From Macrostomum lignano (lineage: Eukaryota), in assembly GCA_002269645.1 (NCBI GenBank), contig NIVC01001143.1, forward strand, positions 256,012-320,011: 64,000 bases of DNA, written 5' to 3'. The notes under the pieces are model-generated. The model saw nothing but the letters and a program-made list of their open reading frames with translations. It searched no databases and was not told the DNA's origin. Shown here piece by piece: positions 10,701-59,355 of this stretch (within the stretch, counting starts at the first letter, position 1; each line of letters begins with the position of its first letter). Made by a program: the position numbers and the translations under genes.

Positions 10701-13698
10701 GGGACAGACAGACACAACACGGTGAGGGGACAGACAGACAGACACAACACAGTTGAGGGGACAGACAGACACAACACGGTGAGGGGACAGACAGACACAA
10801 CACGGTGAGGGGACAGGCAGACACAACACAGTTGAGGGGACAGACAGACACAACACAGTGAGGGGACAGACAGACACAACACGGTGAGGGGACAGACAGA
10901 CAGACACAACACGGTGAGGGGACAGACAGACAGACACAACACGGTGAGGGGACAGACAGACAACACAGTTGAGTTGACAGACAGACACAACACAGTTGAG
11001 GGGACAGACAGACACAACACAGTGAGGGGACAGACAGACACAGCAGAGGATTAAAACACACATCCAGACACACATGTGGGAAAGGGCAGGCCCGTGAGCA
11101 GGCCATCAGACCATCAAAGAGAAGTGCACTCATGCAGAGCGCACCTCCCAGACATTCAACCTTTGCAAAGTTGTCTAACAGAATCAAAACTGTACCAAAG
11201 GACAGAGCAGTGAAGGAGTGCAGTAGTTCATGCCGCATTGCACCGGGGGGTGTCAGGTGACATCCCGTCAATACTGAGGACACGGGCCGCAGCTTCTCAT
11301 CAAACTGGTCAGAAGTTCTTTCATTGTCGCTGCAGGCTCACTAATGAATCGGTGATGAGGCCAGGGGTTGTCTCCCGTCTCCCTCCTCCCCAAGCCGCTG
11401 CTCCCGTAGACCTGGTGGCCGAACCCCCCCCGCCCCTCCGCCCCCCCCCCCCCCAGTGGCGGTCAGGTGAGAAACAAGCGGCAGAGGGGAGATACCAGGG
11501 AAATCCCATAGAAGCCCAGCCCGGGCTGTGGGGTGGGGAGCAGCGACCGGCGGGCCGGGTAAAAGTGCAGCCGCACTTGATCTGCTCAGCCCGTTGAGTA
11601 GGGAGGGCGCCTGCCTGGAGCTGCACCTGAACTCGTCCACCCCGGTCAATCAATTGAGAGAAGAGCTGGCGGCCGGAGTGGCCGGCTGGGGCTCACACGG
11701 CTGGGCCCCGGCTTAGCAGCCCCTGCCTTACCTTGCGCTACTGCAGAGATCGCAAGTCCAAAAATAGAGCGCGTGAGAGAGAGAAAGAGAGCGAAAAACA
11801 AGAAGGTCTCGAGTGGGAGAGGGTGAAAGCGGCAATGAAATTTAGTCGAGTACGATTGTGAAGTTTATTGCTCGTGTATGCAAAAGCCTTCGCGTGTTCC
11901 ATTTATAGTCATAGGCAAGACTAGCAATCCAATCTATTGCCTGGTTAGATTAGCAATCCACTCTATTCCCTCATCCACATTGGCTAGACTAGCAATCCAC
12001 TCTATTGCCTGGTTAGATTAGCAATCCACTCTATTCCGTCATCTACATTGGCTAGACTAGCAATCCACTCTGTTCCCTCATCCACATTGGCTAGACTAGC
12101 AATCCACTCTGTTCCCTCATCCACATTGGCTAGACTAGCAATCCACTCTATTGCCTGGCTAGACTAGCAATCCATTCTATTGACTCATCTGCATTGGCTA
12201 GACTAGCAATCCACTCTATTCCCTCATCCGCATTGGCTAGACTAGCAATCCACTCTATTGCCTGGCTAGACTAGCAATCCACTTTATTCCCTCATCCGCA
12301 TTGGCTAGACTAGCAATCCACTCTATTGCCTCATCCGCATTGGCTAGACTAGCAATCCACTCTATTCCCTCATCCGCATTGGCTAGACTAGCAATCCACT
12401 CTATTGCCTCATCCGCATTGGCTAGACTAGCAATCCACTCTATTGCCTCATCCGCATTGGCTAGACTAGCAATCCACTCTATTGCCTCATCCGCATTGGC
12501 TAGACTAGCAATCCACTCTATTGCCTCATCCGCATTGGCTAGACTAGCAATCCACACTATTCCCTCATCCGCATTGGCTAGACTAGCAATCCACTCTATT
12601 GCCTCATCCGCATTGGCTAGACTAGCAATCCACCACCGACTTGCTCGCACCTCGAACAGCGGCTTGGTGATATTTGAATGCGGCATGCGGCCTCTCCCAC
12701 CGCCACCGCCGCCGCCTTCAAAGCTGAGCTGGAAGGCCTGCGGGCAGTAGCCGCTGCCTCCGCCGCTGCCCGCGCTGCTGGCAGTGGCAACCGCGCCGTC
12801 CTCCGCGCCTGCCTCGCCGGCGGCGCCACCTCCTGGGTCCTCCGGCGTCGTCACCAGGAAGGAGCGCAAGGCGTCGCAGACTTTGTCCTCCAGCTTTTCG
12901 TACTGCGACTTGAGGCTGGAGACCCGCTCCAGCAGCTCGAAGATGTCGGCCCCGTCCAGCTGCGGGTGCGACAGAGTATTATGTCTAAACAATAGAATCT
13001 ATACTCATCTAATCACTATCTATAGTATGTCTCGTCAATGTCCATCCAATGCCCAATCAATGCCTATGCAATATGCATGCAAATTCTCTTATACTTGTAG
13101 TTTCCTATAGCTGCATGTGTTTAAAATATGTCGACCCTCAGCTGTAAGCAATCAAAAAAGATCCCCCATCTTGACATGAAAATCTTGGCAATGACTCGCA
13201 ATGACTCAGAGAATTCGCGAGCAATGAATAACGATCCTGGTTGAATCGCTGTAGCGCAGGGGCGATTTAACAGACAGATTGGCTTAATAACCCCCCCCCC
13301 GGTCACTGACTGACTCACGAGCTGCCTCACCCCAGATACTCCAATCGCTCAAGCCCAGTTTCTCAGACCCAGTCTGGCGTAAGTGCATCAACGATATAAG
13401 GTCATCCTCAATGCTGATCCCGGGATTTGATGATGCGCGGCTCTTCAAAGCAAATAACAGAAGGCAGGCGGGCGGGCCCGTGACTCACCGATCTCTTGTT
13501 CAGCTGGGAGGCCTTCGTGCCGCAGAACAGCTCGGAGATCAGCTCCAGCAGCAGCTCAAAGTAGCGCACTTCGCTGCGAATAAATTTTGTGGAGGCTTTG
13601 TCGTGATTTTCTAAGAAATATCGACACAATATGTTTATATGATACTTTATGAAGGCCTGTCTTGTCTCTCTGTTATAGTGAATGTCTCTGCCTTAGTC

Positions 13699-36300: not shown

Positions 36301-39300
36301 CCGACAGGTGCCATTGCGTCGACTTCCAGCTGGTGAAGCTGCAGGAGGCGCCCGAGGCTGTGCCGCACGGAGAGACGCCCCGTCATCTGCAGGTGAATTG
36401 ACTGAGTTTCGGTGATTAGTACTGGCATAAATCTAGATATGCGATGTGGTGTGCCGCGTGTGCTCATGGTGTTTAATGTAGTGTGCTCATGGTGTTTAAT
36501 GTAGTGTGCTCATGGTGTTTAATGTAGTGTGCTCATGGTGTTTAATGTAGTGTGCTCATGGTGTTTAATGTAGTGTGCTCATGGTGTTTAATGTAGTGTT
36601 CTCACAGTGTTTACTGTAGTGTGCTCATGGTGTTTAATGTAGTGTGCTCACAGTGTTTACTGTAGTGTGCTCATGGTGTTTAATGTAGTGTGCTCATGGT
36701 GTTTAATGTAGTGTGCTCATGGTGTTTAATGTAGTGTGCTCACAGTGTTTACTGTAGTGTGCTCACAGTGTTTACTGTAGTGTGCTCATGGTGTTTACTG
36801 TAGTGTGCTCATGCGTTTAATGTAGTGTGCTCATGGTGTTTAATTGCATGCTAACTTACCAAACTGTCCACCTGTCAGGTGTACCTAGACCGCTACCAAT
36901 GCGACCGCATCGCCCCTGGCAACCGGGTCAGCATTGTCGGCGTCTACAGCGTTCGCGGCCAGGCGCCCAAAGGCAGCGGCAACCTGGGCGGCCCCGGAGT
37001 TCGCGCCACCTACGTGCGCGCCCTGGGCATCGCTCTCGAGGAGTCATCGCACGGAATCGGCGGCGCGCCTTCCGACGAGGAGGAAGAGGAGTTCCGGCGC
37101 CTGGCCGCCAAGCCGGACATTCAGGAGCGCCTGGCGCGCAGCATCGCGCCCTCCATCCTGGGCTCCGTGGACGTCAAGAAGGCCATCTGCTGCCTGCTGT
37201 TCGGCGGCTCCAGGAAGCGAATGCCCGACGGCCTCTACAGGCGCGGCGACATCAACGTACTGCTTCTGGGCGATCCAGGTATGATTAAACTGCTTTGTCT
37301 GTTATTTACCTGCTCAGCTGAGCCACATCTCACCCATGAGAGAGCGGGCAGCACCTGCTCAGCTGAGCCACATCTCACCCATGAGAGAGCGGGCAGCAAA
37401 TGCTCAGCTGAGCCACATCTCACCCATGAACGAGCGGGCAGCAAATGCTCAGCTGAGCCATATCTCACCCATATCTCCAGCAGTCCCCGCCCACCCACTG
37501 CAGGCACGGCCAAGTCGCAGCTGCTGAAGTTCGTTGAGAAGTGCGCCCCAATCGCCGTGTACACCAGCGGCAAGGGCAGCTCGGCGGCCGGCCTGACAGC
37601 GTCGGTCATCCGCGACCCGTCGTCGCGCGGCTTCGTCATGGAAGGCGGCGCCATGGTGCTGGCCGACGGCGGCGTCGTGGCAATCGACGAGTTCGACAAG
37701 ATGCGCGAAGACGACCGGGTGGCGATTCACGAGGCCATGGAGCAGCAGACCATCAGCGTGGCCAAGGCCGGCATCACCACCACTCTGAACAGCCGTTGCT
37801 CCGTGCTGGCCGCCGCCAACTCCGTGTTTGGTAAGGTTTAGGTCTTGGGTGTTTGGCAGGGTTTAGGTCTTGGGTGTTTGGCAGGGTTTAGGTCTTGGGT
37901 GTTTGGTAGGGTTTAGGTCTTGGGTGTTTGGCAGGGTTTAGGTCTTGGGTGTTTGGTAGGGTTTAGGTCTTGGGTGTTTGGTAGGGTTTAGGTCTTGGGT
38001 GTTTGGTAGGGTTTAGGTCTTGGGTGTTTGGTAGGGTTTAGGTCTTGGGTGTTTGGCAGGGTTTAGGTCTTGGGTGTTTGGCAGGGTTTAGGTCTTGGGT
38101 GTTTGGTAGGGTTTAGGTCTTGGGTGTTTGGTAGGGTTTAGGTCTTGGGTGTTTGGTAGGGTTTAGGTCTTGGGTGTTTGGCAGGGTTTAGGTCTTGGGT
38201 GTTTGGCAGGGTTTAGGTCTTGGGTGTTTGGTAGGGTTTAGGTCTTGGGTGTTTGGTAGGGTTTAGGTCTTGGGTGTTTGGTAGGGTTTAGGTCTTGGGT
38301 GTTTGGTAGGGTTTAGGTCTTGGGTGTTTGGTAGGGTTTAGGTCTTGGGTGTTTGGTAGGGTTTAGGTCTTGGGTGTTTGGTAGGGTTTAGGTCTTGGGT
38401 GTTTGGTAGGGTTTAGGTCTTGGGTGTTTGGTAGGGTTTAGGTCTTGGGTGTTTGGTAGGGTTTAGGTCTTGGGTGATTGGTAGGGTTTAGGTCTTGGGT
38501 GTTTGGTAGGGTTTAGGTCTTGGGTGATTGGTAGGGTTTAGGTCTTGGGTGTTTGGTAGGGTTGCATCAAATGCATCAAATCATCGAGGCACTAAGAAAA
38601 CTTCCTATGCACCAATGTGGCTTCTAACTTGAATTTGGTGCACTAATCAATAAGAAATAGACTATGCAAAGTAGGCTTGGCATAGTAGAGATCACTCTGC
38701 TACTTGAGTAGAACCAGTCGACCTACTATCAGTAGTCAGTACGGGGGTAGACTGCTACAAATATTACTTAAATTCTGTGCTATGCTGGAATATTCTCACC
38801 GAGTGTCACGTGACTCCACCTCCGACAGGCCGCTGGGACGAGACCCGGGCCGCCGGCGAGAACATAGACTTCATGCCGACCATCCTGAGCCGATTCGACA
38901 TGATCTTCATCGTCAAGGACGAGCACAGCGAGGCCCGCGACACCGAGATGGCCCGCCACGTGCTGCAGGTCCACCTGCGCGGCAGCGTCTTCGGTGCCGC
39001 TGCCGAAGCCGCAGCTGCCGGTGGCGCCCCGGCCGTCTCCGAGGACGAAGTGCCGCTGGACAAGCTGCGCCGGTACATCTCCTTCTGCCGGGACCGCTGC
39101 GGCCCCAGGCTGAGCGAGGCGGCCGCCGCCCGCCTGGAGAATGCCTACGTTGCCATGCGGGGCGAGGCCAAAGAGATCGAGACTGCGGCCGCCTCGTCCG
39201 CTGGCGGCGCCGTGTCTGGCAAGCACAGGTGAAGAAGGGTGCAGGGTGCACGTGAACTGGTTCATTACATGGGGTAAGCAGAGCTTAGGACAGGGCAGTG

Positions 39301-46750: not shown

Positions 46751-47758
46751 AAGGAGCTGTTTTTTTTCTAGAAAAATTTGCAATGCTGTTTCTAGGGCTT
46801 TTCTTCATGCTAAATTGCCAGGGCGTTGCTATGGAATCTCTAGGCCCTTGGATGCTGAGTCTGATGGCTGCAATCCAAATAGCGCCACACGGGAACAGAT
46901 CCCTACTCGCAAAAAATGGAAGTCTCCTGTTCCGCCCACTTCTCAAATATTTTCTTTGCTAAAGGCGGGGGCGCACAGAAAGAGGCTCTGAGGTGCATGA
47001 TCGATGAGCTCAGGCCTATGCATTGAGTCAACAATTAATGCAGGCGGCCCAGCCTCCCCCCCCCCCCCAGCAACCCGTGATCAGCCACTCGGCCTTCTGC
47101 CGATCAGGGCATTATCAGAACCCAATAGCAGCTGGACAGACAGAAAAAAAACATCTTTACGATATCCTAATCCCAGTTTCCTACAAAGCTTCATCATTGC
47201 CATCCGGCCGTCTGGAAGATGATAAAGCAATCAGATCGGAAAGGGGAGGATCAGCGGGGCTCAAGCGATGCTGATTAATCCGCAATCTGTCTGACTGGCG
47301 GGCCCGCGCACTCCAGCAGCTCCGGGATTCTGGGAAACGCCATTTCATCCTGCCGCACTATACCCGCGCCCCAGCAACTCGATGACGTCCTTCAGCTGGA
47401 AAGGAAAATCGCCGAGAGGATGAGTGCTTCATCTTGCCCACTTTCTCCATCACAGAGAGAGGCATTGGCGGTCTCAATCAAAGTAATGGACTCGGCTTAT
47501 TGAAGAGCAATATTGGCTCTGAGTGCCTCTACTGGCCCGCGTTTGCTTAAGTCGGATGGCCGGGGCGGGGGCCGCCAGCTCCCGATAAAAACTGGCCCTC
47601 TTGGGGAAAATTTCTGGAAGCCAACCAACCGCTTTCCAGCCCTCCCATCTGCTGCCCTAGCAACTGGAGCGAGCAGTATAGAAATCGCATATTTTGGAAC
47701 TCCGAAGGCTGCACTGAATTTTCTCGCTCTCCCCGCCTTGCACAGCTCGCTGGCACCT

Positions 47759-49744
47759 ATGCCGCAGAATCTCGTCCTCATCATCTGCGCCTGCGTCGCT
47801 GCCGCCGCCGCCGCCGCAGCTGGCAGCGACGCCTCCTCGGACATCGCCGAGGCCTCCAGTCTCCTTGGCAACAGCAGCGAGCCGCCCTGCTACCCGGAGG
47901 CCGCCGCCTGCCGCCTCTACGGCGACTGCTGCCACGCTGTGGCCAACCGCAGCGGCGTCGCCCTCCGGCAGCTCGAATGCGCCCCGGCCAGCAGCCTCGG
48001 CGTGCTGTTCAACGACGGAGCCGGCGAGGACGGCGCCTTCGTCAGCCTGGTGCAGAGCTGCCCGCCCAGCGCTCCGCCCGGCGACCCGGATGTCCGGCTC
48101 TGCTACAGCCAGCAGGCCGAGCCGCGCAGCCTCTTCGACCCGCGCCACCTACCGGCGATGTCGCCTGACGGCCTGCTGTTCCGCAGCGCCCACTGCGCTC
48201 GCTGCAACGGCCGGCGCCGGCTGCTGTGGCCGCAGGTGTCTGTCCTGTGCGCTCCGGGCAGCCCGAAGACCGCCGCCAACCTCAGCAAGGAGCAGATCGA
48301 GCAGTTCCTGCGCCAGGAGCTCGCCAGCGGGCGGGACCTGCCGCCTGGCTGCCTGGTGGCCACCCGCTTCCCCGGCCGGCCGCTGCACCGCTGCTACGGC
48401 CCCGGCCTCGTCCAGCACTGCGTCAATTTGTCGGCCACCACCGAGCAGCGCCAGCTATGCGAGGACGGCGGCCTGGTGGCCATGAACTACTCCGCCTGCG
48501 GCGGCGTGTTCCGCAACCAGGCCTGTCGGGACTGCTTCGGCGTCTGCCCGGAGTTCGGCTTCGGCGCCTTCGGCAGCTTCGGCTTCGGCGGCGGCCGAGG
48601 CGGCGGCGTGCTCAGCAACGTGGTGAACTTCTGGATCCCGCTGCGAGAGCCGGTGTCCAGCGGCGACGTCCAGACGTTCGACACGCAGTGGGTGGCGGAC
48701 GGCTCCTTCAAGGGGAATGTCAGCGACAACGCGACTTCCGCTGCGACGACTGGCGGAGCCGCCACCGATGCGGCCGCCGACGAGGAATCCGGCTGGGTGC
48801 AGCGGCTCGTGCTGGTCGTCTCCTACGCCGTGTCCATCGCCTCCCTGACGCTGCTGCTCGCCGTGTACGCCTTGCTGCCGCACCTGCGCAACCGGGCCGG
48901 CCAGCTGCTGATGTCGCACGCAGCCTCCGTCCTGGCGTTGCAGGCGGCCCAGCTGCTCAGCCTGTGCGCCGGCCAGCAGCTCGGCGGCGGCTGCATCGCG
49001 CTGCACTTCTTCTTTTACTTCTGCATGGCGGCCGCCTTCGTGTGGGCCTTCCTGTTCGGCTGGGACCTCCTGCGCACCTTCGCCTCCCTGCTGCGCAACT
49101 CCGCCTTCAAGCCGAGCCGCTACGGCCGCTTCGCCCTGGTGGGCTGGGGGCTGCCGCTGCTGCTCACCGGCCTGCTGCTCGGCCTCCACCTCGGCATCGG
49201 CCTGCTGGACTCCGGCTGCCGCTACCGCCCCGACCGCGTGGCCTTCATGCTGGGTCTCAGCTTCGGGCCGCTGCTGGCCGCCCTGCTGTTCAACCTGGCC
49301 ATCGTGCTGCTGCTCGGCCTGCAGCTGCTGCGCACCTACCGGGAGACTCGCTCGGCCGGCCGCAGCTCCGCCGCCAAGCTGTGCGCCATGACCGCCAAGG
49401 TGTCCGTGATCATGGGCGCCGCCTGGCTGCCGTACTTCCTGGCCACTCTGCTGGACCGCGGCCGCAACCCCGGCACCGTCGGGTTCGCCTCAGAGCTGCT
49501 GTGCAGCCTGCACGGCCTCCTGCTGGCCGTCGGCTTCACCGGCAACCGCCGCGTCCGGGCCCGGCTGTCTGAGATCACCTCCTCGGCGCTGAAGTCCTCC
49601 AGCGGCAGCGGCGGCGCCAAGGGCTCCGAGGCCTCGCGGATGACGCTGGCGCGGCGGTCGCAGGACGCGGGCCGCGGCGTCCAGGTGCAGCGGCTGCTCG
49701 CGGACAAGCCGCAGCCCGGGCAGCTCAACGAGTCTCCGGCTTGA
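47759..49744 (+). CDS. Intronless class B (secretin/adhesion superfamily, Methuselah-like) GPCR, 661 aa
   Basis: ATG 47759 followed by a signal-like LVLIICACVAAA; Cys-rich ectodomain (CRLYGDCC, FRSAHCARCNG, FRNQACRDC); seven hydrophobic segments with class B motifs LRNRAG (ICL1), C at the top of TM3, GWGLP (TM4), VIMGAAW, LHG (TM7). Confidence 0.9.
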   Translation: MPQNLVLIICACVAAAAAAAAGSDASSDIAEASSLLGNSSEPPCYPEAAACRLYGDCCHAVANRSGVALRQLECAPASSLGVLFNDGAGEDGAFVSLVQSCPPSAPPGDPDVRLCYSQQAEPRSLFDPRHLPAMSPDGLLFRSAHCARCNGRRRLLWPQVSVLCAPGSPKTAANLSKEQIEQFLRQELASGRDLPPGCLVATRFPGRPLHRCYGPGLVQHCVNLSATTEQRQLCEDGGLVAMNYSACGGVFRNQACRDCFGVCPEFGFGAFGSFGFGGGRGGGVLSNVVNFWIPLREPVSSGDVQTFDTQWVADGSFKGNVSDNATSAATTGGAATDAAADEESGWVQRLVLVVSYAVSIASLTLLLAVYALLPHLRNRAGQLLMSHAASVLALQAAQLLSLCAGQQLGGGCIALHFFFYFCMAAAFVWAFLFGWDLLRTFASLLRNSAFKPSRYGRFALVGWGLPLLLTGLLLGLHLGIGLLDSGCRYRPDRVAFMLGLSFGPLLAALLFNLAIVLLLGLQLLRTYRETRSAGRSSAAKLCAMTAKVSVIMGAAWLPYFLATLLDRGRNPGTVGFASELLCSLHGLLLAVGFTGNRRVRARLSEITSSALKSSSGSGGAKGSEASRMTLARRSQDAGRGVQVQRLLADKPQPGQLNESPA

Positions 49745-51499: not shown

Positions 51500-54400
51500 T
51501 TAGCGAGCCAGCTTGTGGATTTTGGCCAGCCGCTTGCGCAGTTCGGTTGGAAATTTCTCATAGCACGGCTTGCAGACCGGCTTCAGGTCGTACTCGTAGA
51601 ACTTCGTCCTGCGGCGGCGGGGGCGGTGAGTGCAAAACTGTACATTAGTGAGGGATGGCAGCTTCCTGCCGTGCAGCCAGTGTTTTGCATTTCTGGTCTG
51701 CTTCTTTTGCCTGCAGTTTAATTTCGCCTTGCTGCAGAAATATCAAAATAGCTGCGTGGCAGTATAGCCATAGCTGCCTGTAGTTGTGGGGTAGGCAGTG
51801 GGGTAGGCAGTGGGGGATCCAGGCCCAGGCCAAGAAGTGTCCCAGAGTCACTAGTGAGTAGTTTGCCATGTCTCTTTAGCGATTCTTGTCTCAGTAACTT
51901 TTTAACGGGATAATAATAACGATAATAATAATAATAATAATAATACTTAATTGATTACACCTGCCCTAGTGGGCAGATGTGCAACCGACAGCTCATCTGA
52001 AGGCTGCGTACGGCTGTTCAGTCCAAGGACTGGGAAGGGGAGTTTCAGCACACATCTCAATTACCCTCAATTACCCCGGTGAACTGAAGCAATGCCGAGT
52101 TAAGTGTCTTGCTCAAGGAATCGAACCCCCGACCTTCAAGTCGTGAGTCACGGGGGGGGGGGCACAAGCAGCATCCGCAGACCCAGCGCACTCACTTTTG
52201 ATTCATCTGCCTGTCGCAGACGGAGCACTGGAAGTGGGCGGAGCACCAGCTCTTGCAGCAGGCCTGGACGCACTCGTCGCTGATGGTGTCGTTGCAGACA
52301 AAGCAGGCCTGGCCGAACAGCTGCTGGAAGTGGGTCTCGCAGTAGGCCTGCAGCGCGGGATTTGGATTAGAGAGCGATTATCGATTAGGTTAAGGGAATT
52401 ATCACTTGGATTATCAGTCGGATTAGTGGCAATTCTCATTTGGATTAGGGGAGATTCTCAATCGGATTAGGGACAATTCTCATTTGGATTGGGGAAGATT
52501 CTCAGTCGGATTAGGGGGGCGATTCTCAGTCGGATTAGGGGGGCAATTCTCATTTGGATTAGGGGAGATTCTCAATCACATTAGGGGAGATTCTCAGTCG
52601 GATTAGGGGAGATTCTTAATCGGATTAGGAGCAATTCTCTGTTGGATTAGGGGAGATTCTCAGTAGGATTAGGGGGGCGATTCTCAGTAAGATTAGGGGA
52701 GATTTTTGAATCGGATTAGGGGAGAGTCTTAATCGGATTAGGGAAGATTTTCAATCGGATTAGGGAAGATTTTCAATCGGATTAGGGAAGATTTTCAATC
52801 GGATTAGGGAAGATTTTCAATCGGATTAGGGAAGATTTTCAATCGGATTAGGGAAGATTTTCAATCGGATTAGGGAAGATTTTCAATCGGATTAGGGAAG
52901 ATTTTCAATCGGATTAGGGAAGATTTTCAATCGGATTAGGGGAGATTTTCAATCCTCCCACCTGTCCGCGCCGCTCAAAGAAGCGGGTGCCGTTGAACGG
53001 CTTCTCGCAGACGGCGCACACGAAGTGCTCCACGTGCCAGGCCTTGTTGATGGCGTGCACCACGCGCTCCTCAATCGGCCGGCGGCAGCGGGCGCAGACG
53101 GGGACGCCCAGCTTGTCGAAGCAGCGGATGCAGTACAGCTGGTCGTCCTTCTCGCGGGCTTCAGCGGTGAGCTCGGCGCGGCAGCCGGTGCAGTTGAAGT
53201 GGTAGGGGTGGTAGTTGTCGCCCTTGAAGCGGAGCACCTGGTCGGCCTCGATGATGTCGTGGCAGCGGTTGCAGAGGAAGCGGGCGGCGCCCCGGACCCG
53301 CTCCTTGGCGTTGCAGTCCTTGCACAGGGCGCGGCCGAGGTTCTTCACGAATGCGTCGGTGAGGGCCAGGCCGCACAGCTGGCAGGTGAAGCAGTCCGGG
53401 TGCCAGGAGGACTGCATGGCGCGGATCACCCGGCCGACGATGAACTCGCCTGATAAGGGAGGCGAAACAGATGGATCCAGATTCCTGATGTACAGATCTA
53501 GATGAATGCTGTACAGATCTAGATGAATGCTGTACAGATCTAGATGAATGCTGTACAGACCTAGATGAATGCTGTACAGATCTAGATGAATGCTGTACAG
53601 ATCTAGATGAATTCTGTATAGATCTAGATGAATACTGTACAGATCTAGATGAATGCTGTACAGATCTAGATGAATGCTGTACAGATCTAGATGAATGCTG
53701 TAGAGATCTAGATGAATTCTGTATAGATCTAGATGAATGCTGTACAGATCTAGATGAATGCTGTACAGATCTAGATGAATTCTGTATAGATCTAGATGAA
53801 TGCTGTATAGATCTAGATGAATGCTGTACAGATCTAGATGACTGATGTATATAGATCTAGATGACTGATGTATAGATATAGATGTCTGCTGTATAGATCT
53901 AGAGGCCTGAGATATAGATATAGAAAATCTGACAAGCAACTTACACACCCGCCAAAGCAACTTACACACCCACCAAAGCAACTTACACACCCACCAAAGC
54001 AACTTACACACCCACCAAAGCAACTTACACACCCACCAAAGCAACTTACACACCCACCAAAGCAACTTACACACCCACCAAAGCAACTTACACACCCACC
54101 AAAGCAACCTACACACCCTAGGTTGCAACCTACACACCCTAGGTTGCAACCTACACACCCGCCAAAGCAACCTACACACCCGCCAAAGTAACTTACACAC
54201 CCGCCAAAGCAACCTACACACCCGCCAAAGCAACTTACACACCAACCAAAGCAACCTACACACCCGCCAAAGCAACCTACACACCCACCAAAGCAACCAA
54301 CACACCCGCCAAAGCAACCTACACACCCTAGGTTGCAACCTACACACCCGCCAAAGCAACCTACACACCCTAGGTTGCAACCTACACACCCGCCAAAGCA

Positions 54401-57400
54401 ACCTACACACCCGCCAAAGCAACCTACACACCCGCCAAAGCAACCTACACACCCGCCAAAGCAACCTACACACCCGCCAAAGCAACCTACACACCCTAGG
54501 TTGCAACCTACACACCCGCCAAAGCAACCTACACACCCGCCAAAGCAACCTACACACCCTAGGTTGCAACCTACACACCCTAGGTTGCAACCTACACACC
54601 CGCCAAATCAACCTACACACCCTAGGTTGCAACCTACACACCCACCAAAGCAACCTACACACCCGCCAAAGCAACCTACACACCCTAGGTTGCAACCTAC
54701 AAACCCGCCAAAGCAACCTACACACCCTAGGTTGCAACCTACACACCCTAGGTTGCAACCTACAAACCCGCCAAAGCAACCTACACACCCTAGGTTGCAA
54801 CCTACACACCCTAGGTTGCAACCTACACACCCTAGGTTGCAACCTACACACCCTAGGTTGCAACCTACACACCCTAGGTTGCAATCTACACACCCGCCAA
54901 AGCAACCTACACACCCTAGGTTGCAACCTACACACCCGCCAAAGCAACCTACACACCCGCCAAAGCAACCTACACACCCGCCAAAGCAACCTACACACCC
55001 ACCAAAGCAACCTACACACCCGCCAAAGCAACCTACACACCCGCCAAAGCAACCTACACACCCGCCAAAGCAACCTACACACCCTAGGTTGCAACCTACA
55101 CACCCGCCAAAGCAACCTACACACCCGCCAAAGCAACCTACACACCCGCCAAAGCAACCTACACACCCGCCAAAGCAACCTACACACCCACCAAAGCAAC
55201 CTACACACCCACCAAAGCAACCTACACACCCGCCAAAGCAACCTACACACCCACCAAAGCAACCTACACACCCGCCAAAGCAACCTACACACCCACCAAA
55301 GCAACCTACACACCCACCAAAGCAACCTACACACCCACCAAAGCAACTTACACACCCGCCAAAGCAACCTACACACCCTAGGTTGCAACCTACACACCCG
55401 CCAAAGCAACCTACACACCCGCCAAAGCAACCTACACACCCGCCAAAGCAACCTACACACCCTAGGTTGCAACCTACACACCCGCCAAAGCAACCTACAC
55501 ACCCTAGGTTGCAACCTACACACCCACCAAAGCAACTTACACACCCGCCAAAGCAACTTACACACCCGCCAAAGCAACCTACACACCCGCCAAAGCAACC
55601 TACACACTCGCCAAAGCAACCTACACACCCTAGGTTGCAACCTACACACCCACCAAAGCAACCTACACACCCGCCAAAGCAACTTACACACCCGCCAAAG
55701 CAACCTACACACCCTAGGTTGCAACCTACACACCCGCCAAAGCAACCTACACACCCGCCAAAGCAACCTACACACCCGCCAAAGCAACCTACACACCCTA
55801 GGTTGCAACCTACACACCCACCAAAGCAATCTGCACACCCACCAAAGCAACCTACACACCCACCAAAGCAACCTACACACCCGCCAAAGCAACCTACACA
55901 CCCACCAAAGCAACCTACACACCCGCCAAAGCAACCTACACACCCGCCAAAGAAACCTACACACCCACCAAAGCAACCTACACACCCACCAAAGCAACCT
56001 ACACACCCGCCAAAGCAACTTACACACCCGCCAAAGCAACCTACACACCCTAGGTTGCAACCTACACACCCGCCAAAGCAACCTACACACCCGCCAAAGC
56101 AACCTACACACCCTAGGTTGCAACCTACACACCCACCAAAGCAATCTGCACACCCACCAAAGCAACCTACACACCCGCCAAAGCAACCTACACACCCGCC
56201 AAAGCAACCTACACACCCACCAAAGCAATCTACACACCCACCAAAGCAACCTACACACCCACCAAAGCAACCTACACACCCGCCAAAGCAACCTACACAC
56301 CCACCAAAGCAACCTACACACCCTAGGTTGCAACCTACACACCCTAGGTTGCAACCTACACACCCGCCAAAGCAACCTACACACCCGCCAAAGCAACCTA
56401 CACACCCACCAAAGCAACCTACACACCCACCAAAGCAACCTACACACCCGCCAAAGCAACCTACACACCCACCAAAGCAACCTACACACCCGCCAAAGCA
56501 ACCTACACACCCACCAAAGCAACCTACACACCCTAGGTTGCAACCTACACACCCACCAAAGCAACCTACACACCCTAGGTTGCAACCTACACACCCACCA
56601 AAGCAACCTACACACCCTAGGTTGCAACCTACACACCCACCAAAGCAACCTACACACCAACTTGCAGCGCAGACTCACCGCACTTGGCGCAGCAGGGCTT
56701 GAACAGCACACTGAAGTCGTGCTCGCAGTACTTCCTGCCGTCGAACTGAAAAGCAGCAAAATGCAAGCAGGCTGCACGCAGAACTTCGGAGAGCACAACA
56801 TCACAGCAGCAACAGCTCTTACCTCGTAGAATCGGCCGCCCTCAAACGGCCGGAAACACTGGGCGCACCTGGAAATGCGGCATGCCAGTTAAGCATTGAT
56901 GGTAAATTGATGACGGCAGGCCAGAGCCAGTGTGATGAATAGATAGAACAATATAAACAAAAATAAAAAGATGGGACAACACAGAGGCTGAGCATTCAAT
57001 CGCTGGTACATTTTATTATGCCATTTAAATAACCAATCAAGTGTGCTGGCCGACAGAACTGGACAAGGTAAGCAGTCAGCAAACAACAAATAAGCAATAT
57101 AAATTTAAATAAAGTATACAGGCCGCTCCAGTGGATTGGCAGCGCAGACAGACGGACTCTGCATGACAGCAGCGCCAAGCCATACTGTGTGCCATGGCGA
57201 GTGTGCATGGGGCGATGGGGCTCACCGGCCTGGATGTCACTTTGTTACTCATTAGTACTCTTGCTAATCACCTCAATCCATCTATCGATTTCTATAAGAT
57301 ATTTAAAATCAGTCCCGTTGAGATCCCTAGAATGAATCCCATTAAGATCCCTAGAATGAATCCCATTAAGATCCCTAGAATGAGTCCCATTAAGATCCCT

Positions 57401-59310
57401 AGAATGAATCCCATTAAGATCCCTAGAATGAATCCCATTAAGATCCCTAGAATGAATCCCATTAAGATCCCTAGAATGAATCCCATTAAGATCCCTAGAA
57501 TGAATCCCATTAAGATCCCTAGAATGAGTCCCATTAAGATCCCTAGAATGAATCCCATTAAGATCCCTAGAATGAATCCCATTAAGATCCCTAGAATGAA
57601 TCCCATTAAGATCCCTAGAATGAATCCCATTAAGATCCCTAGAATGAGTCCCATTAAAGTCCCTAGAATGAATCCCATTAAGATCCCTAGAATGAGTCCC
57701 ATTAAAGTACCTAGAATGAATCCCATTAAGATCCCTAGAATGAGTCCCGTTGAGATCCCTAGAATGAGTCCCGTTGAGATCCCTAGAATGAATCCCATTA
57801 AGGTCCCTAGAATGAATCCCATTAAGATCCCTAAAATGCCTTAAAATGCCTCAAGTAATCGCAATCCCGAGAGAAGCAGTGAGATCAGTTACAGCACTAG
57901 ATAATTTGTCTTGAGCCCCACAAATAAGTCAAAGTGCAGCTTCCTCAACCAGCGCAATCATTATTGAATCCACTAAAAGTGCAAATCCCAATAAACCAAA
58001 TCAGTGAAATGTACTTTTACAATAAAATAATTGGAAAGTACACGACAACATATCAAGACCACTCGCTAGGCTGTATAATCGCAGTTGACAACATGAGAAG
58101 TCGAGTAAAGCTGAGAAGCGCCCCCTGTTCGACAGGAGGAGGACTTACACAAAGCAGTGCTGGTGCCAGAAGCGGCCCTCATAGGCCAGCACCCCGCTAA
58201 CCAGGCTGCCCTCGCAGTGGGCGCAGCTGCGAGCGCGGGCAGCGCCGTCGCCGCTAAAGGCGGGCGTTATCGAGCAGTGTGATTTTGTTTAAAACAATTG
58301 CATTTTTAGTTGCTATGGCATAACTCGAGCGGATAATTACTAGACAGAAGTGAATTAAAGTGGTCAACAAATAAGTTAACAATCTGCAAATAAGCTGCGT
58401 GTGCACAGCTGCACACCCCAGTAGTTCATAGCCTGAGATTTTTATGACCAAAAAATTATTATTTTATTAGTCAGAAAAACTGGATCAAAACTGAGCACCT
58501 GGGAGGGCGGTGACTGCAAACCGAGCATCTGGGAGGGCGGTGACTGCAAACTGAGCATCTGGGAGGGCGGTGACTGCAAACCGAGCATCTGGGAGGGCGG
58601 CGACTGCAAACTGAGGATCTGGGAGGGCGACGACTGCAAACTGAGCATCTGGGAGGGCGACGACTGCAAACTGAGGATCTGGGAGGGCGGCGACTGCAAA
58701 CTGAGCATCTGGGAGGGCGGCGGCGACTGCAAACTGAGGATCTGGGAGGGCGGCGGCGACTGCAAACTGAGGATCTGGGAGGGCGGCGGCGACTGCAAAC
58801 TGAGGATCTGGAAGGGCGGCGACTGCAAACTGAGGATCTGGGAGGGTGACTGCATTAAACTGAGGCATGAATTCCCCAGATCTGATGACAGAACAAAATC
58901 GGTCAAGCGCAAGCAGGCAGCCGTGCGGACTCACACAAAGCAGTGCTCATGCCAGGCCTCGCCGCCGGCCCGGAACACCCGATCGGCGCGGCCGAACGTC
59001 TCGCCGCAGCGCTGGCAGGCCGAGGACTCGCCGACACAGACGTTGGCCGAGCCGGCCGGGCCGCTCAGCTGCATGCGGCTGTCAAAGGAGAAAAAAAAAA
59101 GAGGGTGCAAATTTCTGCTTCTAAAAGATAAGAAACACAATTCGAGCCAGGAGTCACAACAGTTGATTTCCAAGCTCACTCGAATCCGCCCTGCACCATG
59201 TCCAGCTCAGTCTGGTAGTGGTCAAGGCTGTTATTGCTGCCGTCCAGGTGCCTCCCAGCGGCGCCATCAAAATTGACAGGCAGGTGTCCGGAATTGTAAG
59301 TGGCAGCCAT
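51500..59310 (-). CDS. LIMS1/PINCH-like: PINCH / LIMS five-LIM-domain adaptor (UNC-97 type), 378 aa with exon A or 365 aa with exon B
   Basis: Exons (minus): 59310-59180, [A 59078-58935 or B 58253-58149], 56868-56823, 56745-56679, 53449-52962, 52347-52196, 51608-51500; all phases fit. Matches LIMS motifs [73 protein letters not shown]. An upstream exon may exist. Confidence 0.95.
51907..52152 (-). mobile_element. Second copy of the CORE-type SINE, 5'-truncated and internally deleted, in the last PINCH intron
   Basis: Reverse complement shares gactcacgacttgaaggt..ggttcgatt, tccttgagcaagacactt, gcattgcttcagttcacc, cggttgcacatctg and an (att)n tail with the 35565 copy. Confidence 0.85.
52372..52954. 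repeat. 22-bp minisatellite (gattagggaagattttcaatcg)n filling a PINCH intron
   Basis: Perfect next to the donor at 52961 and degenerate toward the acceptor. Confidence 0.95.
53488..53905. repeat. 21-bp minisatellite (gtacagatctagatgaatgct)n
   Basis: Direct. Confidence 0.94.
53935..56660. repeat. 21-bp minisatellite, ~130 copies, two main variants (gcaacctacacacccRccaaa / gcaacctacacaccctaggtt)
   Basis: Direct; starts ~15 nt after the donor at 56678. Confidence 0.97.
57308..57838. repeat. 24-bp minisatellite (gatccctagaatgaatcccattaa)n
   Basis: Direct. Confidence 0.95.
58149..58253 (-). CDS. Alternative PINCH exon B encoding a second version of the N-terminal half of LIM1
   Basis: CCTTTAG acceptor and GTAAGT donor; 105 nt, phase 2-2; [35 protein letters not shown]. 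Confidence 0.8.
58497..58866. repeat. 30/33-bp minisatellite (tgcaaactgaggatctgggagggcggcgac)n between the two alternative PINCH exons
   Basis: Direct. Confidence 0.93.
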
Positions 59311-59355
59311 TGCCTGCAACAGAACAGCATTTCAAATCTATTAACATTCAAAATA

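Follow-up and report, generated by a model that had tools for sequence, protein, structure and literature searches.

Introduction

Mutually exclusive homologous exons that arose by tandem duplication are classically known from Drosophila Dscam and the tropomyosins. What enforces the choice of exon in these cases is a disrupted reading frame, steric hindrance, spliceosomal incompatibility or competition between RNA pairings. Here we describe two homologous exons, A and B, in a PINCH/LIMS gene of Macrostomum lignano. This flatworm is a tractable model for regeneration and stem cells, in which RNA interference (RNAi) and transgenesis are established. The gene lies on the minus strand at 59310-51500 of a 64-kb stretch of contig NIVC01001143.1 (assembly GCA_002269645.1, positions 256,012 to 320,011, forward strand). 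This whole stretch is called the window, and its numbering is used throughout. Exon A supplies the first zinc finger of the LIM1 domain in the annotated protein, and exon B is unannotated. We conclude that exon B is probably a real, selectively maintained alternative coding exon derived by tandem duplication of the LIM1 first-finger exon, and that an mRNA joining exon A to its neighbors e1 and e3 is probably the default form.

LIM1 of PINCH suffices for binding to the ankyrin-repeat domain of ILK and is seated in the ankyrin groove (PMC3561323, PMC8799556), in agreement with a preliminary description of the locus. This binding is the step that assembles and stabilizes the ILK-PINCH-parvin adhesion complex. 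Vertebrate PINCH1 and PINCH2 (LIMS1 and LIMS2) compete for the ILK ankyrin-repeat domain (PDB 3IXE title). An alternative exon that replaces half of LIM1 would give this complex a built-in means of tuning, and such an exon seems to have been conserved in several spiralian phyla.

Gene structure and identity

The exons of the gene and the two introns that flank exon B are as follows (a slash marks an exon boundary or, in e3, the codon boundary after its first base; e5 to e7 together encode LIM2-LIM5 and the C-terminal tail).

59310-59180, minus strand: exon e1, 131 nt, opens with the ATG at 59310, ends in phase 2, donor GTGAGC
59078-58935, minus strand: exon A, 144 nt, phase 2 to 2, acceptor ...ttctcctttgacag/C, donor GT/GTGAGT
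58934-58254, minus strand: intron A-B, 681 nt, with a 30-nt minisatellite at 58488-58846 of ~12 copies
58253-58149, minus strand: exon B, 105 nt, phase 2 to 2, acceptor ...cgcccgcctttag/C, donor GT/GTAAGT, unannotated
58148-56869, minus strand: intron B-e3, 1280 nt, with a 24-nt minisatellite at 57313-57838
56868-56823, minus strand: exon e3, 46 nt, phase 2 to 0, start G/TGC GCC CAG TGT TTC (CAQCF)
56745-56679, minus strand: exon e4, remainder of the LIM1 second finger and start of LIM2
53449-52962, minus strand: exon e5, first of the three exons for LIM2-LIM5 and the tail
52347-52196, minus strand: exon e6, within the LIM2-LIM5/tail coding part
51608-51500, minus strand: exon e7, with TAA at 51502-51500

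The coordinates and phases first given for e1, A and B all hold, and e3 ends at 56823, not 56822. An AG precedes each of exons A to e7 and a GT follows each of e1 to e6. The finger used in the annotated protein comes from exon A and is the canonical "type 1" first finger of LIM1 (C-x2-C-x18-H-x2-C). Exon B encodes a 9-residue linker (GDGAARARS) and an alternative first zinc finger (C-x2-C-x16-H-x2-C). Each of the two exons opens with a single base that completes a codon, and in each the finger leads into FV. The GT that ends either exon opens a Val codon that is completed by the first base, G, of e3, which encodes the start of the constant second zinc finger of LIM1. The polypyrimidine tract is much stronger at the exon A acceptor than at the exon B acceptor, which is consistent with default inclusion of A and regulated inclusion of B.

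GenBank model PAA71746.1 (BOX15_Mlig024389g1, P0001, 378 residues) is identical to the product of the e1-A-e3 splice path, that of e1 included, and omits exon B. The contig of this protein, NIVC01001143.1, matches the window at 100%. Identification of the gene as PINCH is upheld by its five tandem LIM domains and short basic C-terminal tail, which are collinear with PINCH proteins, and by database matches. A full-length protein search returned 364 proteins at E<=1e-20, with the gene's own GenBank protein as top match. Among the best 120 of the 364 matches, most of the named ones are LIMS1/LIMS2, unc-97 or stck, at 49-67% identity. Human PINCH1, used as a tblastn query, covers LIM1 to the tail across e3-e7.

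An AG acceptor (gttgcag/gca, window 59311-59320) lies 3 nt 5' of the e1 ATG and suggests an upstream 5' untranslated exon or a spliced-leader trans-splice site.

Coding character of exon B

Either exon, when joined to e3, completes LIM1, and both junctions match the Pfam LIM family (PF00412), exon B with E 1.7e-24 and exon A with E 2.8e-27. For exon B the match spans residues 54-106 of the isoform-B N-terminus and profile positions 1-55 of 58. The LIM first-finger pattern is present as CAHC-x16-HQHC-FV in exon B, followed by CAQC in e3. The isoform-B N-terminus also matches the solved PINCH LIM1 structures 1G47, 3IXE_B, 2KBX_B and 3F6Q_B (E 1e-17 to 1e-19). Fingers A and B are 38% identical with all zinc ligands aligned. 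The two exons are, as the preliminary description proposed, homologous and phase-compatible, each encoding a complete LIM1 first finger, and exon B is indeed an unannotated exon born by exon duplication.

Scanned in six frames, the 64 kb contain the motif C..C-x14-24-[WYF]H..C[FL] exactly twice, at A and at B. Composition-preserving shuffles contain it a mean of 0.02 times, so exon B is not a chance occurrence. Its GC content is 0.71 and its third-position GC content (GC3) 0.85, beside a GC3 of 0.90 for the whole coding sequence and a GC content of 0.39-0.52 for the introns. Upstream of exon B the reading frame contains stop codons and no ATG, and exon B must therefore be spliced to e1 or A. 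The stops and the lack of an ATG also rule it out as an alternative first coding exon.

The ends of exons A and B are near-identical over 12 coding and 8 intron bases, 19 of 20 positions being the same (CACTGCTTTGT/GTGAGTCC at window 58931-58950 and CACTGCTTTGT/GTAAGTCC at 58145-58164, both minus strand). Both ends include the rare codon TTT, in a gene with a GC3 of 0.90. The corresponding ends in the paralogue described below show no such mutual match. A short tract of gene conversion could account for the similarity, as could a splicing constraint common to both exons.

Copies and a paralogue in M. lignano

The assembly holds two further near-identical PINCH copies, L002 (NIVC01000194.1) and L003 (NIVC01000195.1). 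Exon B is identical to the window exon at 105/105 nt in both. The unique intron sequence differs from that of the window by ~0.3% in L002 and by ~3% in L003 (33/1105 sites). Measured against the L003 intron divergence, zero changes in exon B have P ~0.04, a weak test. The GenBank models of all three close copies omit exon B, and the annotation is corrected here accordingly. Minisatellite copy numbers vary among the three copies, including those of the 30-nt array in the A-B intron. The L003 copy is followed by a 791-residue open reading frame (ORF) with a DUF4371 match and a weak hAT-dimerization match, which suggests a transposase.

A diverged paralogue, L004 (NIVC01001978.1; proteins P0123 and P0004), is 75% identical to the PINCH protein from CAQCF onward. 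Its exon order is that of the window gene: e1, A-like, B-like, e3. The two finger exons are as follows, in contig coordinates.

10935-11120: L004 A-like exon, 186 nt, end TGCTTGAA/gtgagt, phase 2 to 2
12230-12376: L004 B-like exon, 147 nt, acceptor ctcag/G, end TGCTTCGT/gtgaga, phase 2 to 2

Both lengths are divisible by three, and the four zinc ligands and the W-H pair are intact in both exons. Because frame, splice sites, zinc ligands and G..WH..CFV are kept at this level of divergence, B-type exons appear to be under selection in both genes. A UniProt protein model of the paralogue (A0A1I8IS40, P0022) runs from the B-like finger straight to CAQCF, without A. The near-identical copies and the paralogue fit the hidden polyploidy reported for M. 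lignano (PMC10468722).

The longer linker of the L004 B-like exon contains an extra CxxC (CRVC) at 12230-12290, upstream of the finger proper. The B-like ORF runs in frame ~160 nt further upstream, where there are other possible phase-compatible acceptors.

An extra finger exon in other phyla

Two kinds of LIM1 first finger were distinguished. Type 1 is the canonical finger, C.RC.EGF...E.IVNSNGE.WH..CFV. Type 2 is an extra finger, C.KC......E.MVN[YF]NG.VWH..CFV, that follows a linker of 5-15 residues. Among the PINCH homologues and the members of their clusters, RefSeq isoforms from 11 genera have a second finger inserted between the type 1 finger and CAQCF.

Gastropods with type 2: Patella, Haliotis, Gigantopelta
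Bivalves with type 2: Crassostrea/Magallana, Ostrea, Saccostrea, Mizuhopecten, Pecten, Argopecten
Brachiopod with type 2: Lingula
Bryozoan with type 2: Watersipora

Examples are Patella vulgata XP_050389046.1, Lingula XP_013382896.1, Haliotis XP_046381595.1 and Crassostrea XP_052705865.1. Modelled isoforms in these relatives carry type 1 only or type 1 and type 2 in tandem. The sole type-2-only isoform among them, Ostrea edulis X3 (P0181), is entered from a different N-terminus and does not reach the second exon by skipping exon 1 from a shared upstream exon. The oyster tandem isoform P0178 (372 residues) is uninterrupted on two 1.4-kb Logan RNA contigs from different sequencing runs, so the tandem form is a real spliced mRNA in oysters. 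It looks like a minor one: 56 Logan contigs carry type-1-only isoforms (44 for P0176 and 12 for P0177) versus 2 for the tandem form.

A profile search of a word-indexed database with type 2 fingers gave one match, P0204. An exhaustive profile search of representatives gave many short genomic ORFs that resemble type 2 exons. One of these ORFs lies in locus L008 (ENA ERZ26222911, contig ctg1020404_27x_l, 487 kb), which has a type 1 exon, a type 2 exon and the CAQCF exon in that order. Another is in locus L005 (ENA ERZ28566637), where the acceptor and donor of the type 2 exon have the phases of exon B. In both loci a GTAAGT donor ends the type 2 exon. L005 and L008 are filed as metagenome assemblies, yet they contain intron-bearing animal PINCH sequence, in L008 a whole gene, and are probably DNA of a host or a co-sampled invertebrate.

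The second finger was not seen among the listed nemertean, cephalopod, chiton, parasitic flatworm, ecdysozoan and deuterostome proteins, a limited list that is no proof of absence. The PINCH proteins of Schistosoma and Echinococcus among the matches have the type 1 finger only.

Relationship of exon B to the type 2 exon

Profile hidden Markov models (HMMs) were built from the type 1 and type 2 fingers of species other than Macrostomum, and the Macrostomum fingers were then scored.

Window A: type 1 HMM 44.6 bits, type 2 HMM 23.0 bits
Window B: type 1 HMM 19.0 bits, type 2 HMM 22.8 bits
Paralogue B: type 1 HMM 19.8-20.6 bits, type 2 HMM 23.3-25.1 bits

In controls, the margin in favor of the matching HMM is at least 10.3 bits for each type 1 finger and at least 13.7 bits for each true type 2 finger (leave-one-out). 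By these scores exon A is clearly type 1.

Placement and motifs add to the comparison for exon B. The position between the type 1 and CAQCF exons, with phase 2 at both ends, is found in the window, L004, L005 and L008. The motif CxHCE is common to exon B, the bryozoan type 2 finger and metagenome exon P0204 (CAHCEAVLDLDCPILNYHGQVWHPQCFT). Exon B has an aromatic Y-x-G-x-x-W-H in place of the type 1 S-N-G, and intermediate type-2-like exons are found in P0263 (VAYNGKLWH) and P0321 (VAYQGRVWH). The duplication that gave rise to exon B was probably the same ancient event that produced the type 2 exon of molluscs, the brachiopod and the bryozoan.

Possible joint use of exons A and B

The preliminary description held that exons A and B must be mutually exclusive and that including both would give a broken module. 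Neither claim is supported. The lengths of 144 and 105 nt are both multiples of three, and hence every combination is in frame: A only, B only, A+B, and double skipping from e1 to e3. The A-B intron is 681 nt long and all sites are GT-AG. The locus shows no enforcing mechanism, whether frame shift with nonsense-mediated decay, a too-short intron, U2/U12 incompatibility or competing RNA pairings. No docking or selector pairings were found; weak scattered inverted repeats, most of which match a GC-rich part of exon A to the minisatellite, do not share a docking site. The pair does have one hallmark of mutually exclusive exons, which is that the two are adjacent, homologous and of the same phase. 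The claim of a broken module is contradicted by relatives: oysters make a tandem mRNA, and the Patella tandem protein is modelled with both fingers folded.

The preliminary description also called for comparison with N-terminal PINCH isoforms of other animals. The extra finger exon is present in those of molluscs, a brachiopod and a bryozoan, and it is mostly added to the first finger, not swapped for it. B-without-A forms exist but are rare (Ostrea edulis X3 and A0A1I8IS40). Since nothing in the sequence forces a choice, the term "regulated homologous cassette exon" suits the locus better than "strict mutually exclusive pair". More generally, a duplicated in-frame exon pair gives, from sequence alone, no ground for the label "mutually exclusive".

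Proposed splicing and structural model

We infer that exon B is used in M. lignano, as follows. The default mRNA would be e1-A-e3, in which finger A completes LIM1. When included, exon B would directly precede the CAQCF second finger, and finger B would then complete LIM1. Inclusion could take two routes. Along the first, which is the form documented in relatives, A and B would both be retained, and finger A would be left as an extra, separate N-terminal finger on the linker GDGAARARS. Along the second, B would be used instead of A and would yield a clean five-LIM PINCH whose first finger is changed. Either way, inclusion of exon B would alter half of the domain that docks into the ILK ankyrin groove. 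The altered half could change affinity or specificity for ILK, or finger A could be freed for another partner.

AlphaFold2 models of two proxies stand in for the spliced proteins of the window locus: the tandem isoform of Patella and the B-only model of the paralogue. In the Patella tandem N-terminus both fingers have a predicted local distance difference test (pLDDT) score of 78-88, and the linker 67. The best match of this model to the solved PINCH1 LIM1 bound to ILK (3F6Q_B) has a root-mean-square deviation of 2.3 A over 61 columns at 62% identity. The contiguous match most likely covers the type 2 finger and the constant second finger. The paralogue B finger plus second finger is modelled with pLDDT 81-92.

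Introns and neighboring genes

Minisatellites with repeat units of 21-30 nt take up most of several PINCH introns (window 51786-59403), and they fill those between e5, e6 and e7. The e4-e5 intron array has ~130 copies of a 21-mer over 2.7 kb. The main arrays and the window neighbors are as follows.

53934-56658: minisatellite array
53489-53903: minisatellite array
52409-52954: minisatellite array
57313-57838: minisatellite array, in the B-e3 intron
58488-58846: minisatellite array, in the A-B intron
47513-49744, plus strand: ORF with a secretin-family seven-transmembrane receptor domain (PF00002, E 7e-17)
36879-37841, plus strand: exon with an MCM P-loop domain (PF00493, E 3e-77)

Alternative explanations

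Several findings weigh against a maintained exon B of type 2 descent. No protein sharing three 5-residue words with exon B turned up in the collection searched, but this says little, because an RNA-derived copy of the annotated isoform is missing there too. Divergence among the three close copies is too small for selection to be tested strongly. Between the two paralogues, identity is 38% in the B fingers, 57% in the A fingers and 75% in the remainder of the protein. P0022 is a partial, odd model that has no start codon and reads in-frame intron sequence upstream of B. Exon B favors the type 2 HMM by +3.8 bits only, versus at least +13.7 for true type 2 fingers. Exon B might be a decaying relic of duplication, unspliced in M. 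lignano, whose intactness reflects the recent divergence of the three copies. The fast evolution of the B fingers and the lack of database proteins would agree with this, as would omission from the three GenBank models, the weaker polypyrimidine tract and scores of ~19-23 bits on both finger HMMs, where typical members reach 45-75. A relic is nevertheless very unlikely. Both paralogues, though only 75% identical in the conserved part of the protein, keep the frame and length of B, its AG and GT, four zinc ligands and G..WH..CFV, at a distance where neutral sequence would be expected to be scrambled. The GC3 of exon B matches the coding bias of the gene, and its 105 nt carry zero substitutions against 3% in the flanking unique intron.

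Two other explanations accept exon B as an exon and differ in its use or its history. Under strict mutually exclusive splicing, each mRNA would hold exactly one of A and B, and two clean five-LIM isoforms would differ in the first finger of LIM1. The adjacent, homologous exons of equal phase and orientation suit this, a canonical LIM requires just one first finger, and the database contains B-only forms (P0022 and Ostrea X3). We consider it unlikely given the exon lengths, the 681-nt intron, the ordinary GT-AG sites, the lack of docking or selector repeats and the real oyster tandem mRNA. Moreover, the second exon co-occurs with the first in every relative with listed isoforms, and Ostrea X3 reaches it from a different N-terminus. 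A separate origin of exon B, by an A/B duplication within the flatworm lineage before the paralogue split and convergent with type 2, concerns history and not use. It draws on the small HMM preference (3.8 bits for B, 3.5-4.5 for the paralogue B) and on the type-1-only PINCH of Schistosoma, Echinococcus and the listed nemertean, cephalopod and chiton isoforms. It is doubtful in view of the position, phases and linker-plus-finger layout, which recur in three other phyla and in L005 and L008, and of the shared CxHCE and the aromatic Y-x-G-x-x-WH bridged by P0263 and P0321. The +3.8-bit preference does not prove that exon B and the type 2 exon of the other phyla are orthologous; one ancient duplication is likelier than two, and the sequence agrees weakly. 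A maintained alternative exon, with A as default, thus remains the reading we prefer.

Comparison with known systems

Tandem-duplication alternative exons are already known as a class, and RefSeq models of other species already include the type 2 exon. A literature search found no paper that joins PINCH/LIMS1 with mutually exclusive or tandemly duplicated exons, and no description of the type 2 exon. New here are the unannotated exon B in M. lignano, in three close copies and a paralogue, the extension of the range of the extra exon to flatworms, and its behavior in relatives as an add-on cassette and not a strict alternative. It is quite possible, though short of probable, that an alternative LIM1 first-finger exon has been kept, undescribed, since before flatworms, molluscs, brachiopods and bryozoans diverged. 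If so, the ILK-PINCH-parvin complex would exist superphylum-wide in two LIM1 flavors, among them a "one-and-a-half LIM" form that has an orphan finger, and the LIM1 forms may differ in ILK affinity, stability or choice of partner. RNAi and transgenesis would make M. lignano suitable for testing the role of exon B.

The closest counterpart of exon B is the type 2 exon of LIMS1/PINCH in molluscs, Lingula and Watersipora, which likewise lies between the type 1 and CAQCF exons. In those phyla it encodes a 5-15-residue linker and then C-x2-C-x18-19-H-x2-C-F-V or -S, is optional and frame-preserving, and has the phases of exon B where DNA is readable (L005 and L008). The Macrostomum B finger differs in being two residues shorter, in lacking the E-Q-M-V-N-[YF]-N-G core and in its weak type 2 score.

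Like classic mutually exclusive exons, A and B are adjacent same-phase duplicates that encode alternative versions of one structural element. Unlike them, they show none of the enforcing mechanisms, and a double-inclusion mRNA exists in relatives. Vertebrate PINCH1 and PINCH2 resemble A and B in presenting different LIM1 versions to the same ILK site, with a nearly invariant second finger (CAQCF...). In vertebrates, however, LIM1 diversity comes from gene duplication and involves whole proteins, whereas in Macrostomum it would come from an alternative exon within one gene and involve the first finger only.

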